This document shows, in pieces, positions 2,242 through 8,420 of a DNA stretch of 64,000 nucleotides (position 1 is the stretch's first letter; each line of letters opens with the position of its first letter). The notes under the pieces are model-generated. The model searched no databases and had not been told where the DNA came from. It was given only the letters and a program-made list of their open reading frames with translations. The DNA comes from Pseudomonas aeruginosa PAO1 (GTDB lineage Bacteria; Pseudomonadota; Gammaproteobacteria; Pseudomonadales; Pseudomonadaceae), in NCBI RefSeq assembly GCF_000006765.1, contig NC_002516.2, one strand, 5' to 3'. The position numbers and the translations under genes are program-made.

Positions 2242-4482
2242 ATGTCCTCACGCGCCCTTCCCGCCGTTCCCTTCCTGCTGCTGTCCAGTTGCCTGCTCGC
2301 CAACGCCGTACACGCCGCCGGCCAGGGCGACGGCTCCGTCATCGAGCTGGGCGAGCAGACCGTGGTCGCCACCGCCCAGGAGGAAACCAAGCAGGCGCCG
2401 GGGGTTTCCATCATCACCGCCGAGGACATCGCCAAGCGACCGCCGAGCAACGACCTGTCGCAGATCATCCGGACCATGCCGGGGGTCAACCTGACCGGCA
2501 ACAGCTCCAGCGGCCAGCGTGGAAACAACCGGCAGATCGACATCCGCGGCATGGGCCCGGAGAACACCCTGATCCTGGTCGACGGCAAGCCGGTCAGCTC
2601 GCGCAACTCGGTGCGCTACGGCTGGCGCGGCGAGCGCGACAGCCGCGGCGACACCAACTGGGTGCCGGCCGACCAGGTCGAGCGCATCGAAGTGATCCGC
2701 GGCCCGGCGGCGGCGCGCTACGGCAACGGCGCGGCGGGCGGCGTGGTGAACATCATCACCAAGCAGGCCGGCGCGGAAACCCACGGTAATCTCAGCGTCT
2801 ACAGCAATTTCCCGCAACACAAGGCCGAAGGCGCCAGCGAACGGATGAGCTTCGGTCTCAACGGGCCGCTCACGGAAAACCTCAGCTACCGCGTCTACGG
2901 CAACATCGCCAAGACCGACTCGGACGACTGGGACATCAACGCCGGCCACGAATCCAACCGTACCGGCAAGCAGGCCGGCACCCTCCCCGCCGGTCGCGAA
3001 GGCGTGCGCAACAAGGACATCGACGGGCTGCTCAGCTGGCGCCTGACGCCCGAGCAGACCCTCGAGTTCGAGGCCGGCTTCAGCCGCCAGGGCAACATCT
3101 ACACCGGCGACACGCAGAACACCAACAGCAACAACTACGTGAAGCAGATGCTCGGCCACGAGACCAACCGCATGTACCGCGAGACCTACTCGGTCACCCA
3201 TCGCGGCGAATGGGACTTCGGCAGCTCGCTGGCCTACCTGCAGTACGAGAAGACCCGCAACAGCCGGATCAACGAAGGCCTGGCCGGCGGCACCGAAGGT
3301 ATCTTCGACCCCAACAACGCCGGCTTCTACACCGCCACCCTGCGCGACCTGACCGCCCACGGCGAGGTCAACCTGCCGCTGCACCTGGGCTACGAGCAGA
3401 CCCTGACCCTCGGCAGCGAGTGGACCGAGCAGAAGCTCGACGACCCCAGCTCCAACACCCAGAACACCGAGGAAGGCGGCTCGATCCCCGGTCTCGCCGG
3501 AAAGAACCGCAGCAGCAGTTCCTCGGCGCGGATCTTCTCGCTGTTCGCCGAGGACAACATCGAGCTGATGCCCGGCACCATGCTCACCCCAGGCCTGCGC
3601 TGGGACCACCACGACATCGTCGGCGACAACTGGAGCCCATCGCTGAACCTGTCCCACGCGCTCACCGAGCGGGTCACCCTGAAGGCCGGTATCGCCCGCG
3701 CCTACAAGGCCCCCAACCTGTACCAGCTGAACCCCGACTACCTGCTCTACAGCCGTGGCCAGGGTTGCTACGGGCAAAGCACCAGTTGCTACCTGCGCGG
3801 CAACGACGGCCTCAAGGCCGAGACCAGCGTGAACAAGGAACTGGGCATCGAGTACAGCCACGACGGCCTGGTAGCGGGGCTGACCTACTTCCGCAACGAC
3901 TACAAGAACAAGATCGAATCCGGCCTGTCACCGGTCGACCACGCCAGCGGCGGCAAGGGCGACTACGCCAACGCGGCGATCTACCAGTGGGAGAACGTGC
4001 CCAAGGCGGTGGTCGAGGGCCTCGAAGGCACCCTGACCCTGCCCCTGGCCGACGGCCTGAAGTGGAGCAACAACCTCACCTACATGCTGCAATCGAAGAA
4101 CAAGGAAACCGGCGACGTGCTCTCGGTGACGCCGCGCTACACCCTCAACTCGATGCTCGACTGGCAGGCCACCGACGACCTCTCGCTGCAAGCCACGGTC
4201 ACCTGGTACGGCAAGCAGAAGCCGAAGAAATACGACTATCACGGCGACCGTGTCACCGGCAGCGCCAACGACCAGCTCTCGCCCTACGCCATCGCCGGCC
4301 TCGGCGGCACCTATCGGTTGAGCAAGAACCTGAGCCTCGGCGCCGGCGTCGACAACCTGTTCGACAAGCGCCTGTTCCGCGCCGGCAATGCCCAGGGCGT
4401 GGTCGGCATCGACGGGGCCGGCGCGGCGACCTACAACGAGCCCGGACGGACCTTCTATACCAGCCTGACCGCGTCGTTCTGA
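2242..4482 (+). CDS. pfeA: TonB-dependent ferric-enterobactin receptor PfeA
   Basis: Signal peptide, plug domain (IDIRGMGPENTLILVDG; IEVIRGPAAARYGNGAAGGVVNIIT), C-terminal Phe; FepA-like. Confidence 0.96.
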   Translation: MSSRALPAVPFLLLSSCLLANAVHAAGQGDGSVIELGEQTVVATAQEETKQAPGVSIITAEDIAKRPPSNDLSQIIRTMPGVNLTGNSSSGQRGNNRQIDIRGMGPENTLILVDGKPVSSRNSVRYGWRGERDSRGDTNWVPADQVERIEVIRGPAAARYGNGAAGGVVNIITKQAGAETHGNLSVYSNFPQHKAEGASERMSFGLNGPLTENLSYRVYGNIAKTDSDDWDINAGHESNRTGKQAGTLPAGREGVRNKDIDGLLSWRLTPEQTLEFEAGFSRQGNIYTGDTQNTNSNNYVKQMLGHETNRMYRETYSVTHRGEWDFGSSLAYLQYEKTRNSRINEGLAGGTEGIFDPNNAGFYTATLRDLTAHGEVNLPLHLGYEQTLTLGSEWTEQKLDDPSSNTQNTEEGGSIPGLAGKNRSSSSSARIFSLFAEDNIELMPGTMLTPGLRWDHHDIVGDNWSPSLNLSHALTERVTLKAGIARAYKAPNLYQLNPDYLLYSRGQGCYGQSTSCYLRGNDGLKAETSVNKELGIEYSHDGLVAGLTYFRNDYKNKIESGLSPVDHASGGKGDYANAAIYQWENVPKAVVEGLEGTLTLPLADGLKWSNNLTYMLQSKNKETGDVLSVTPRYTLNSMLDWQATDDLSLQATVTWYGKQKPKKYDYHGDRVTGSANDQLSPYAIAGLGGTYRLSKNLSLGAGVDNLFDKRLFRAGNAQGVVGIDGAGAATYNEPGRTFYTSLTASF

Positions 4483-4489
4483 GCCATAA

Positions 4490-5416
<927 letters not shown>

Positions 5417-5448
5417 AGACGCACGCTCCCAAGAGAACCGAGGCAACG

Positions 5449-5474
5449 GCGGATAACCGCTTCGCGGTTATTCG
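5449..5474 (+). repeat. REP palindrome, left part, interrupted by the IS (continues as CCCTAC at 6847)
   Basis: GGCGGATAACCGC-TTC-GCGGTTATTCG is an imperfect palindrome; joining it to 6847 onward restores ...GCGGTTATTCGCCCTAC, the P. aeruginosa REP consensus as I recall it. Confidence 0.8.
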
Positions 5475-5490
5475 TATATGGACTCCTCCC

Positions 5491-5749
5491 GGTTTGCCAG
5501 TGTTTGTCTTGATTTCAAACCTGTGTACGACTGCATCCGTATATCCGGCTTCATGGAGTGGTGTTGCAACTCCCGAGCCCTGATGAAATGCGCGCCTGCA
5601 TACCTGATCGCCCTAACGGCTTTGCTTCACTGCAGCAGGGAGCCCACGTATAAACCAGGTTTCATGCAGGCCGGTTCGACCGGTTCGTCATCATTGTCAT
5701 TCACTGAGCAATCGTGGTGGATGTTTCAACTACGGTGTGGCAGGAACGC
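5491..5749 (-). ncRNA. Putative bridge/seek RNA in the IS non-coding end (boundaries approximate)
   Basis: Contains short matches to the target (5608-5615) and to both IS ends (5583-5590, 5539-5544); IS110/IS1111 elements are known to encode such guide RNAs. Confidence 0.65.
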
Positions 5750-6766
5750 TCAACCGGGCCGGTAGCATGTCTCCCGGCTGAGTAAAGCCCAAAGGATCCG
5801 GGCATTCTTGTTGGCCAGGGCAACGGCGACGACATTGGCAGGACGCCGTTGCAGCAGACCTTGCAGCCAGCGGCTGCGGGCATCGGTCTTGTTGGCGCAA
5901 CAGCGCACGACTGCACGGGCGCCATGGATGAGCAAGGTCCGCAAGTAGGTATCGCCGCGCTTGCTGATGTTGCCCAAGCGCTGCTGCCCGCCCGTGGAGT
6001 GCTGCCGTGGCACCAGGCCCAGCCAGGCCGCAAACTGGCGGCCCGTGCGGAATTGCCGTGCATCACCGGCGGATGCCGCCACCGCGCTGGCGCTGATCGG
6101 GCCGATGCCTTCCACCGCCAGCAGGCGCTGGATGCGGGCATCGCCACGTACGTGAGCCTGAATCTGTCGCTCCAGTCGAGCGATGCGCGCCTCCAGCGTC
6201 TGCAATTCATCTTTCAATTCACGCAACAGCTCGCCCATCGGGGCCGGCAAGGGCGCCGGCTCGGTAGCCATGACCGTTTCGAGCAAGGCCATCGTCGCCG
6301 CTCGCCCACGTCGAGTCGCGATCAGCCCGAACTCACCCAGCAAGCCACGCACCTCATTGCACAACGCCGTGCGGGCCCGCACTAGACGACTGCGCACCCG
6401 ATGCATCGACTGCACGGCCTGCTGCTCTGCGCTCTTCACCGGGACATAGCGCATGCTCGGACGACTGGCGGCTTCGCAGATCGCCTCGGCGTCGTGTGCA
6501 TCGTGCTTGTCACCCTTGACGTAGGGTTTTACGAACTGCGGTGCGATCAGGCGTACCGTGTGGCCCAGCTCCCGCAACTCGCGCGCCCAGTAGTGCGCAC
6601 TGCCGCAGGCCTCCATCGCCACCAGGCACGGCGGCAGTTGGCGAAAGAAATCCCGCACCTGTGCCCGCTTGAGTTGGCGACGACATACCACATGCTCGTG
6701 ACGATCAACGCCGTGCACCTGGAATACTTGTTTTGCCAGATCCAGACCAATGCGACTAAGGTTCAT
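5750..6766 (-). CDS. IS110-family DEDD transposase/recombinase (338 aa from ATG 6766)
   Basis: RuvC-like IGLDLAK, VAMEACG, KHDAHDAEAIC; C-terminal GIGPISA and WLGLVPRQHSTGG (catalytic Ser region). Confidence 0.95.
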   Translation of the reverse strand: MNLSRIGLDLAKQVFQVHGVDRHEHVVCRRQLKRAQVRDFFRQLPPCLVAMEACGSAHYWARELRELGHTVRLIAPQFVKPYVKGDKHDAHDAEAICEAASRPSMRYVPVKSAEQQAVQSMHRVRSRLVRARTALCNEVRGLLGEFGLIATRRGRAATMALLETVMATEPAPLPAPMGELLRELKDELQTLEARIARLERQIQAHVRGDARIQRLLAVEGIGPISASAVAASAGDARQFRTGRQFAAWLGLVPRQHSTGGQQRLGNISKRGDTYLRTLLIHGARAVVRCCANKTDARSRWLQGLLQRRPANVVAVALANKNARILWALLSRETCYRPG

Positions 6767-6902
6767 GCTGACTCCCCCTCCGGGACTTGTGGCTGCACCA
6801 TTAGTCTGGCGCTTGACGCCGTAGGAGGGAGGAGTCCATTTCATTGCCCTACCGGAAGCCAGGCATCCGCGCGCCGCTGCATCCCTCTACGCTGCACGGC
6901 AT

Positions 6903-6937
6903 CCTCTCCCGCCTGCGGGAGAGGGTTGGGGTGAGGG
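6903..6937. repeat. CCTCTCCC-N6-GGGAGAGG-GTTGGGGTGAGGG palindromic extragenic repeat
   Basis: 8-bp perfect stem followed by GGGGTGAGGG tail; resembles a widespread proteobacterial intergenic repeat. Confidence 0.55.
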
Positions 6938-6946
6938 AAAATCGCC

Positions 6947-8152
6947 CTACGCCACCACCGGAATCAGCGGGTCGGCCGCCGCCAGCGCCACGGCGCGGTC
7001 CGCCGCCGGCGGGTAGATCCACACGCCATTGATCTCGGTCTTGATCTTCTTGCCCTCCTCGCGCACGAACCGTACCTGGCGGTCCCAGCCCTCGGTGAAC
7101 ACCGCGCCCCAGCCGCCGAGGTCGAGACAGGTCACGTACTTCACCTGGCTGTAGGGAATCGGCTCGACGCCGAGCAGGTCGGCAGCCACGTTATTGCCGG
7201 CCGAGCGCCCCAGGGCGATGGCGTGCTGGCAGGTCATCAGGGCATGGTTGCCGAGGTCGTCGGTAGCCGCGCGGGCCACGTCGCCGGTGGCGTAGACATC
7301 GTCGAGACCGAGCACCTTGAGGTTGCGGTCGACATGCAGGCGACCCTGGGCATCGCGCTCGCCCGGAATCTGCCCGGTCAGGGTGCTGGCCCGCACGCCC
7401 ACGGTCCAGACCACGGTCTTCGCCTCGATCCGCTGGCCGTCGTCGAGCGTCACGCCCTCGGCATCCACCGCCGCCACCGAACGCCCCAGGCACCACTCCA
7501 CGCCCAGTTCCGCCGAGGCCTCGGCGATCAAGCCGCTCAGGTCCGCGCCCATCGATGCGCCGATGGCGGCGCCGCGGTCGACCACGATCACTCGCAGCGC
7601 CGCTTTCTCGCCGAGGATCGCCCGCAGGCGCGCCGGCATCTCGGTGGCGGTCTCGATGCCGGTGAAGCCGCCGCCGGCGACCACCACGGTGTTGCGTGCC
7701 GGCGAATCCGGCAAGTCGCGCAGGGCATGCAGGTGTGCCTCCAGGCGCAGGGCGTCTTCCAACTGGTCGACATCGAAGGCCGCGTCGATGCCGGCGACAC
7801 TCGCCGGACGCCACACGCCGCTGCCGGCCGCCAGCACCAGGCGGTCGTAGTCCAGTTGCGCCAGCGTGCCCTCGGCATCGCGGTACTCCACTCGCTTGCC
7901 GGCCACGTCGATGCGCTGCGCGCTGCCCTGCACGAAACGCACGCCGACCGCGGCGAACAATTCGCCCAGCGGCGCCGCCATGCGCTGCACGTCAGGCTCG
8001 TAGAAACGCGGGCGGATGCGCAGCTCGGGCTGCGGCGCGAGCACCGCGACCTCGACGTCGTCGCGGCCCTGGCGGTCGAGCTGGCGCACTGCGCTCAGCG
8101 CGCTCCACATGCCGGCGAATCCGGCACCGACGATCAGGATACGTTGTTTCAT
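6947..8152 (-). CDS. FAD-dependent NADH dehydrogenase-like oxidoreductase (NDH-2 family), 401 aa
   Basis: Two Rossmann motifs (IVGAGFAG, VAGGGFTG), ATGD FAD motif; ATG at 8152. Confidence 0.88.
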   Translation of the reverse strand: MKQRILIVGAGFAGMWSALSAVRQLDRQGRDDVEVAVLAPQPELRIRPRFYEPDVQRMAAPLGELFAAVGVRFVQGSAQRIDVAGKRVEYRDAEGTLAQLDYDRLVLAAGSGVWRPASVAGIDAAFDVDQLEDALRLEAHLHALRDLPDSPARNTVVVAGGGFTGIETATEMPARLRAILGEKAALRVIVVDRGAAIGASMGADLSGLIAEASAELGVEWCLGRSVAAVDAEGVTLDDGQRIEAKTVVWTVGVRASTLTGQIPGERDAQGRLHVDRNLKVLGLDDVYATGDVARAATDDLGNHALMTCQHAIALGRSAGNNVAADLLGVEPIPYSQVKYVTCLDLGGWGAVFTEGWDRQVRFVREEGKKIKTEINGVWIYPPAADRAVALAAADPLIPVVA

Positions 8153-8196
8153 TGGGGGCTCCTGGAGAGAAAGGACGGGATATCCGGAGAAAAGCC

Positions 8197-8235
8197 TCTC
8201 CGTAACTACGACTATATTTGTCGTAGTTACGGAGA
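8197..8235. promoter_or_regulatory. Perfect 16-bp inverted repeat, candidate Rrf2 operator
   Basis: TCTCCGTAACTACGAC-tatattt-GTCGTAGTTACGGAGA between the divergent oxidoreductase and Rrf2 genes. Confidence 0.65.
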
Positions 8236-8420
8236 TCAATCCCCGAAAAGCGTTCCGACAGGCAATCGCCCCTCGCCGTGAAAGAGAGGAAAAGACGTCG
8301 AAAACATACGAAAAGGATCGGAGATAGAGCGCTTCGAGGCGGAAGACAGCGAACGACCTGTCCTTGTGAGCGACCTGAAAACCGCGCAGAATATTGCGAA
8401 TATTTCTATCGGAGTTAGTG

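Follow-up and report, generated by a model that had tools for sequence, protein, structure and literature searches.

RNA-guided target choice by IS110 and IS1111 elements was published in 2024, and ISPa11 was among the elements studied. In particular, Siddiquee, Pong, Hall and Ataide (2024, Nat Commun, PMC11187229) describe an RNA that co-purified with the ISPa11 transposase and maps downstream of tnp; by small-RNA sequencing this seekRNA has a 96-nt main form and a longer form, and the 96-nt form, as described there, carries a match to the top strand of the REP target 5′ of a match to the bottom strand. Extended Data Fig. 10c of Durrant et al. (2024, Nature, PMC11208160) includes ISPa11 among six elements with predicted LTG, RTG, LDG and RDG, target and donor, and Supplementary Table 5 of that paper assigns the ISPa11 bridge RNA to the right end. 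The bridge RNA or seekRNA of ISPa11 is already known, and what we report here is a correct rediscovery of the 2024 work with nothing new for biology as such. The comparison does provide a compact illustration of natural reprogramming, with ends and targets defined and guides aligned for 49 distinct relatives, as well as sequence-based support for donor guides in an IS1111 clade, a point left open by the experimental seekRNA paper.

IS621 of E. coli (IS110 group) resembles ISPa11 in having a DEDD recombinase, one RNA with target-binding and donor-binding parts, left guides that pair with the bottom strand and right guides that pair with the top strand, half-sites that both overlap at the crossover, and a REP target. 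ISPa11 differs from IS621 in that its RNA is placed in the right end, downstream of the gene, and not in the left end upstream of it, the guide order is reversed within each part (right guide 5′, left guide 3′, as reported for IS1111 members in PMC11187229), the two donor guides are situated on either side of a hairpin within a multi-branch loop instead of lying in a simple internal loop, the shared crossover is a single C and not a CT dinucleotide, and the element carries long 13-bp subterminal inverted repeats. The seekRNAs of ISEc11 and ISXne4 (IS1111 group) are alike in their downstream non-coding location, a top-strand and then a bottom-strand target match, a circle-junction promoter (putative in ISPa11, below) and natural retargeting by loop changes with the stems kept, as is seen across our relatives L001-L080; they have other targets, and their proteins are about 30% identical to those of the ISPa11 clade. 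Guides have been reprogrammed by experiment in ISEc11 and IS621; for ISPa11, retargeting in nature is visible among relatives. ISPpu9 and ISPpu10 of P. putida (IS110 group) belong to the same superfamily, use one REP position and are helped by a bridge RNA (PMC12288879; PMC1525189), but that RNA lies upstream of tnp, insertion makes a 2-bp duplication, and ISPpu9 has the extra small RNAs Asr9 and Ssr9.

The window (the whole 64-kb stretch of DNA that was analysed) contains an insertion sequence of 1372 bp at 5475-6846, delimited by its subterminal inverted repeat and by comparison with 55 relatives; it and all of its features discussed here lie on the minus strand, referred to below as the transposase strand. 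Its transposase gene (5750-6766, 338 aa plus stop) encodes a DEDD/RuvC-like N-terminal domain (PF01548 at 2e-16) and an IS110-type C-terminal domain (PF02371 at about 9e-25, 9.2e-25), both beyond the curated Pfam cut-offs, and the C-terminal motif GLVPRQHSTG agrees with the published GL-P----S/T-G pattern. Because the transposase is 100% identical to the ISPa11 protein (338/338 residues; Source Data of Siddiquee et al. 2024, PMC11187229), and the Pfam domains, inverted repeats, downstream non-coding region and REP site all fit, the element is ISPa11, which belongs to the IS1111 group of the IS110 family and is inserted in a P. aeruginosa REP. The left subterminal inverted repeat, ATGGACTCCTCCC (6827-6839), is a perfect 13-bp match to the right one, GGGAGGAGTCCAT (5478-5490). 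A 7-nt left-end extension, CAATGAA (6840-6846), precedes the left repeat and a 3-nt right-end extension, ATA (5475-5477), follows the right one, a layout common to the 55 relatives, so that on the transposase strand the order is GTAGGG, C, AATGAA, ATGGACTCCTCCC ... GGGAGGAGTCCAT, ATA, C, GAATAAC. The C at 5474 and 6846 is one nucleotide common to target and element, and the ends are accordingly ambiguous by 1 nt. Upstream of the start codon there are 80 nt of the element, and a non-coding stretch of 275 nt separates the stop codon (5750-5752) from the right end (5475); the right end and non-coding region of a metagenome contig (L089) are identical to those of ISPa11 here. The neighbours of the element (2242-5416 and 6947-8239) are two plus-strand genes, one TonB-dependent receptor-like and one of 304 aa, and a minus-strand gene of 430 aa that is flavoprotein-like. 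This layout probably corresponds to pfeA-pfeE, ISPa11 and PA2691 of PAO1.

The interrupted target consists of a left half, GTAGGG (6847-6852), placed by flank comparison, and the junction C plus right half, C GAATAAC (5467-5474), beyond which the REP hairpin runs on to about 5445. Rejoined on the transposase strand the flanks read ...CCGGTAGGG/C/GAATAACCGCG, and GTAGGG/C/GAATAACCGCGAAGCGGTTATCC is a P. aeruginosa REP; one C is shared, and the target is not duplicated. These flanks equal those of copy ISPa11-4 of PAO1 (Tobes and Pareja 2006, Additional file 2), and the same authors found all six of six PAO1 ISPa11 copies between the sixth and seventh base of REP. Further insertion sites were collected with a metagenome pattern scan and from the 2006 supplementary alignment, the text of which is imperfect and lacks the opening bases of the right REP fragment; insertion is specific for site and orientation, and its position is the same in the six PAO1 copies and in the metagenome copies, and the PAO1 flanks show uninterrupted REPs GTAGGGCGAATAAC....

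Relatives were found by a protein-based scan of one genome per species, which gave 80 loci with transposases 48-80% identical to that of ISPa11; ISPa11 itself is absent from this collection, where relatives reach up to 80% identity. A search of a plasmid collection with the whole element likewise gave no ISPa11, the only match being an 81% fragment in an Aminobacter plasmid. Together with ISPa11, 55 of the 80 loci have the same end layout and clean boundaries. Their flanks vary widely (e.g., GTAGCC/C/GGATGA, CTGACC/T/GCCCCC and TTGGTAC/T/GTCAAC), and the regions downstream of their transposase genes align well. Structure counts below refer to 49 distinct sequences, whose proteins are 51-71% identical apart from ISPa11 itself.

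Position 5523 to 5719 of the minus strand very probably encodes the bridge RNA (= seekRNA) of ISPa11 in its long form of about 197 nt, an assignment made by covariance model and covariation; that the RNA is transcribed and bound by the transposase is reported in the published work (PMC11187229). A covariance model built from 46 relatives, with ISPa11 left out, matches exactly this interval over its full length (129.2 bits, E=5.9e-35) and finds no other copy in the 64-kb window. The consensus structure (RNAalifold with manual completion; 42 pairs in eight helices) has 87% of its cells paired in the 49 sequences, versus 31-46% in controls with the 3′ partners shifted by 1-3 columns; its covariation score is 0.452, versus at most 0.122 in the controls, and was reached by none of 500 shuffles, and 28 of the 42 pairs have changes on both sides. 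An outer stem, ACGAUUGC / GCAGUCGU (5708-5715 / 5527-5534), encloses the long form. Inside it the target-binding arm (5595-5670) is built from P1 (5664-5670/5595-5601), with compensatory changes in all seven pairs, P2 (5655-5659/5603-5607) and the P3 hairpin (5641-5644/5618-5621), which covary too, around a 10+10-nt internal loop. Upstream of the arm lies a hairpin CCGG-UCGAA-CCGG (5671-5683), and arm and hairpin together would make up about 97 nt (5591-5687), nearly the 96 nt published for the seekRNA. Downstream of the arm is the P4/P5 hairpin, GGCU...AGCC around GGGAGU...ACUCC (5547-5579), in which P4 is 100% paired with two covarying pairs and P5 has compensatory changes in 5/5 pairs. The minimum-energy fold of the ISPa11 sequence alone has the same helices as the consensus. 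Its folding energy is not significant (z = -0.76 for 279 nt and -1.24 for 197 nt), so that the RNA could not have been flagged from thermodynamics alone. A search of 5300-7000 against Rfam 15 with E up to 10 gave chance-level matches only and no bridge RNA family, which reflects a missing curated model; a match to a curated family is not a defining feature of such an RNA. A short GCG/UGC helix that had been drawn to close the donor loop was dropped, as its bases belong to the covarying outer stem.

The target guides lie on the two sides of the internal loop of the target-binding arm. The left target guide, UAGGGCGA (5608-5615), occupies the 3′ side. In sense it agrees with the top strand, TAGGG/C/GA, and its pairing is thus with the bottom strand. 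Its DNA, minus-strand TAGGGCGA (plus TCGCCCTA), had been singled out in an earlier note made from the letters alone as identical to the reconstituted target junction; it is in place and spans that junction, and the part of it that stands as a guide is the left 5 nt, the junction nucleotide and 1 nt beyond, with family-wide support for UAGGGCG (5609-5615), the last A lacking such support. The same note had found no clear second target guide. There is one, UUAUACG (5647-5653), on the 5′ side of the loop and complementary to the right half-target CGAATAA at 6 of 7 positions, with one A.A mismatch. Guide matches are thus 8/8 on the left and 6/7 on the right, and the mismatched position is A or G at other ISPa11 sites in metagenomes, never T. 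This order, 5647-5653 followed by 5608-5615 within the arm of about 97 nt, agrees with the layout published for the seekRNA of the same element, to the extent that its description in PMC11187229 gives it.

Retargeting in nature is visible across the relatives, in which the guides track each element's own, different target. Comparison of cognate and non-cognate flanks in 45 elements shows that the left-guide side of the loop (in ISPa11 GUUAGGGCGA, 5608-5617) agrees in sense with the left flank of its own element, with a mean longest exact match of 6.36 nt (76% with 6 nt or more) versus 3.24 nt (1.4%) for non-cognate flanks, and that the right-guide side (in ISPa11 UUUAUACGUG, 5645-5654) is the complement of the right flank of its own element, with means of 5.98 and 3.35 nt, respectively. 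Four wrong-sense or wrong-side controls run on these 45 elements gave no signal. By position, identity of the left guide to its flank is 89-95% at -5 to -1, and for the junction nucleotide and position +1 it is 84% and 80%, respectively; the right guide is 80-95% Watson-Crick at flank positions 1-7 and covers the junction nucleotide in about 57% of the elements. Pairing between guide and DNA tolerates rU.dG and rG.dT.

An unoccupied REP-like half-site is present at 6940-6951 (minus GTAGGGCGATTTT), 94 bp from the left end of the element. It matches the left target guide (TAGGGCGA) in full, its right side, TTTTCCC, has no match to the right target guide, and it is a natural example of the fact that a match to one guide alone does not make a used site.

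The donor guides are found on either side of the hairpin at 5547-5579, which is flanked by CGCGCAUUUCAUCAG and GGAUAUACGGAU, and they lie outside the short form of the published RNA. The right donor guide, CAUUUCAU (5583-5590), is complementary to left-end positions 2-9 (ATGAAATG): minus-strand CATTTCAT (plus ATGAAATG) at this place is the complement of the left end, which reads ATGAAATG on the transposase strand (plus 6837-6844 CATTTCAT), as the earlier note had stated. The pairing of 5583-5590 with the left end holds, and it stops short of the junction, since the adjoining junction-proximal CA (5581-5582) is unpaired with the left-end CA in ISPa11. The left donor guide, AUAUACG (5538-5544), has the same sense as the right end ATATA plus the junction C and the first flank G and pairs with the bottom strand; the ATATAC that the earlier note had matched to the right terminus at 5474-5479 is its greater part, and it is identical to that terminus as claimed (minus 5539-5544, plus GTATAT). 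Nucleotides that bind the donor and lie within a multi-loop are reported for many IS1111 members in PMC11208160, and ISPa11 has the same arrangement. The bridge RNA predicted for ISPa11 in that paper, as far as it is described there, is computational only and concerns the same element and the same right end, with four guides aligned on the core.

It might be proposed that only the target arm guides, that the transposase recognises the ends of the element through the subterminal inverted repeats, and that the donor matches at 5583-5590 and 5538-5544 are dispensable or auxiliary. The account of ISPa11 in PMC11187229 concerns target matches and leaves recognition of the ends open; by its authors' own account, neither what the long RNA does nor how the ends are bound is known, and their 82-nt short seekRNA of ISEc11, with target matches only, moved a mini-IS better than the long form did. 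The donor in that ISEc11 assay was, however, flanked by target, so that the target guides could have read the junctions. The two junction-proximal mismatches of the ISPa11 right donor guide also fit with a dispensable role, and in the family as a whole only 33/49 are paired at the junction nucleotide and 21/49 at the position beside it. Against this, the donor columns of the RNA follow the ends of the elements: opposite left-end position 5 the column forms Watson-Crick pairs in 49/49 (C:G 33, U:A 15, A:T 1), and the one opposite position 6 is paired in 44/49 (29 Watson-Crick plus 15 wobble) over at least eight left-end variants, among them AATGAA, AATGGG, AATGGT, AATGGA, AATGAC, GATGAT and GATGTG. 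The 3′ donor segment copies the right-end variants ATACTA, ACACAT, ATAGAT, ATATAA and ATACAT, and T for C at the junction. These counts are uncorrected for shared ancestry, and the number of distinct types of pairing variants is the stronger point. Donor guides for ISPa11 are among the predictions of Durrant et al. in the figure cited above (PMC11208160). We consider it unlikely that the target arm guides on its own. Such covariation of the donor columns is hard to explain other than by selection for pairing, which speaks for selection on the donor guides within the ISPa11 clade; whether they are necessary for transposition is a separate matter.

The matches are short, and RNA and single-stranded DNA look the same at the level of sequence, so they might instead act as DNA, either as internal copies that bind the transposase or as single-stranded guides like those of IS200/IS605. 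This is highly improbable: the loops that hold the guides are bordered by helices rich in compensatory changes, G-U pairs among them (UG 26 and GU 12, with similar numbers at several pairs), their pairing with DNA allows the two wobble combinations mentioned above, nuclease tests identified the nucleic acid bound in the ISEc11 complex as RNA, and RNA was found with TnpPa11 as well (PMC11187229). For ISEc11, rescue by the region supplied in trans, as a transcript from a separate plasmid, has already been shown.

The earlier note had warned that matches of 6-8 nt can occur by chance, and for each match singly this is correct. In 20,000 dinucleotide shuffles of the 259-nt region, with either sense allowed, an 8-mer from the 25-nt target occurred in 6.1%, an 8-mer from the 16-nt left end in 7.3% and a 6-mer out of the right end's final 8 nt in 14%; some target 8-mer is also present in 55 of the 478 other 259-nt chunks of the real window. 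All three matches occurred jointly in 0.06% of the shuffles. That the matches are not chance is shown by their occurring together, by each having the correct strand polarity and by the covariation in relatives; the idea of three coincidences in a 259-nt GC-rich stretch is already refuted by that covariation, the homologous positions of 48 other elements matching their own, different targets and ends. Comparison of guides with targets across relatives was one of the checks that the earlier note had proposed, and the RNA positions do change with each element's own flanks and ends. Its reading of the matches as guides is supported, each one being in the aligned position and polarity expected of a bridge-RNA guide. 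The case is useful for calibration: three of the four guides that a genuine bridge RNA carries were picked out from the letters alone.

Upstream of the target arm, the bridge RNA contains a near-invariant UGAUGR (5688-5693) that resembles the left-end DNA of the element ((T)GATGG / AATGAA) and is complementary to YCAUC (5582-5586) of the right donor guide; 97.6% of cells are paired (columns 37-42 with 158-162 of alignment A1), and both the consensus and the fold of ISPa11 contain the helix. The guide column agrees better with the left-end DNA (49/49) than with its UGAUGR partner in the RNA (39/49 Watson-Crick). Judging from this complementarity, UGAUGR could mask the right donor guide in the free RNA. 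A further proposal, that the donor-binding half is both selected and gated, with UGAUGR as a decoy that must be displaced by the donor, is speculative and in our view probably wrong; if true, it would amount to a switch not reported before, by which excision could be kept apart from insertion, or the long form of the RNA from the short form. UGAUGA was also considered as a box C (motif RUGAUGA) of a box C/D kink-turn; no conserved CUGA partner was seen, and the IS110-Nop5 preprint makes no mention of it.

The ISPa11 bridge RNA thus has a target-binding arm and a donor-binding region, both inside one outer stem. Its two target guides jointly read a 13-bp stretch of the P. aeruginosa REP and fix the position and orientation of insertion. 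By analogy with IS621 and ISEc11, the DEDD transposase would bind the RNA and bring donor and target together, strand exchange would take place at the shared junction C and give insertion without duplication, and the same guides, applied to the two junctions between element and flank, would serve in excision to a circle. The joined ends of the circle would then form a promoter that drives the transposase gene and the RNA, and the RNA would be trimmed to the shorter form. Joining the ends in silico places a -35-like hexamer, CTGGCA (5495-5500, in the right end), 18 nt upstream of a junction-spanning -10, TACAAT (TA from 5475-5476 and CAAT from 6843-6846). Hexamers and spacing are conserved in a joined-ends scan of 56 elements, and the -10 is a perfect TATAAT in relatives with junction nucleotide T. 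We infer that CTGGCA/TACAAT is the junction promoter of the excised circle, and the arrangement fits the junction promoter known for the IS1111 group. A promoter and terminator scan of the integrated copy gave no sigma-70-like promoter, and its sole terminator-like site is the REP hairpin in the flank.

Several of the relatives are unusual in ways that deserve mention. The shared junction nucleotide is usually the same at both junctions (C/C, T/T or A/A), and it differs in four loci (L001, L017, L025 and L047), with C at the left and T at the right in three and T at the left and G at the right in one; in L017 both target guides specify C. Such elements may have inserted into a site whose junction nucleotide differs from that of the donor. 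In another element, present in four contigs (L011, L037, L081 and L093), the left target guide matches the left flank GTAATC/C, and there is no complementarity between the right-guide region, GAGACCCGG, and the right flank, CGACCCTTGG, which instead have GACCC in common in the same sense; all four contigs have the same flank and may represent one insertion site. The non-coding region of the Ectopseudomonas oleovorans copy (L007) ends just past UGAUGACGA and continues into unrelated REP-rich sequence, so that guide RNA and right end are missing, and this copy is probably immobile. Another element (L026) has about 200 extra nt between the guide RNA and the right inverted repeat and is 1587 bp long, versus about 1350-1410 in the others. 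Finally, two metagenome loci (L084 and L085) are close relatives of ISPa11, with about 83% ungapped identity in the non-coding region and the same REP position. Their left target guide is that of ISPa11, and their right target guide is different, GUUAUCCG, which would pair perfectly with the REP variant CGGATAAC, an ISPa11 site in locus L082.
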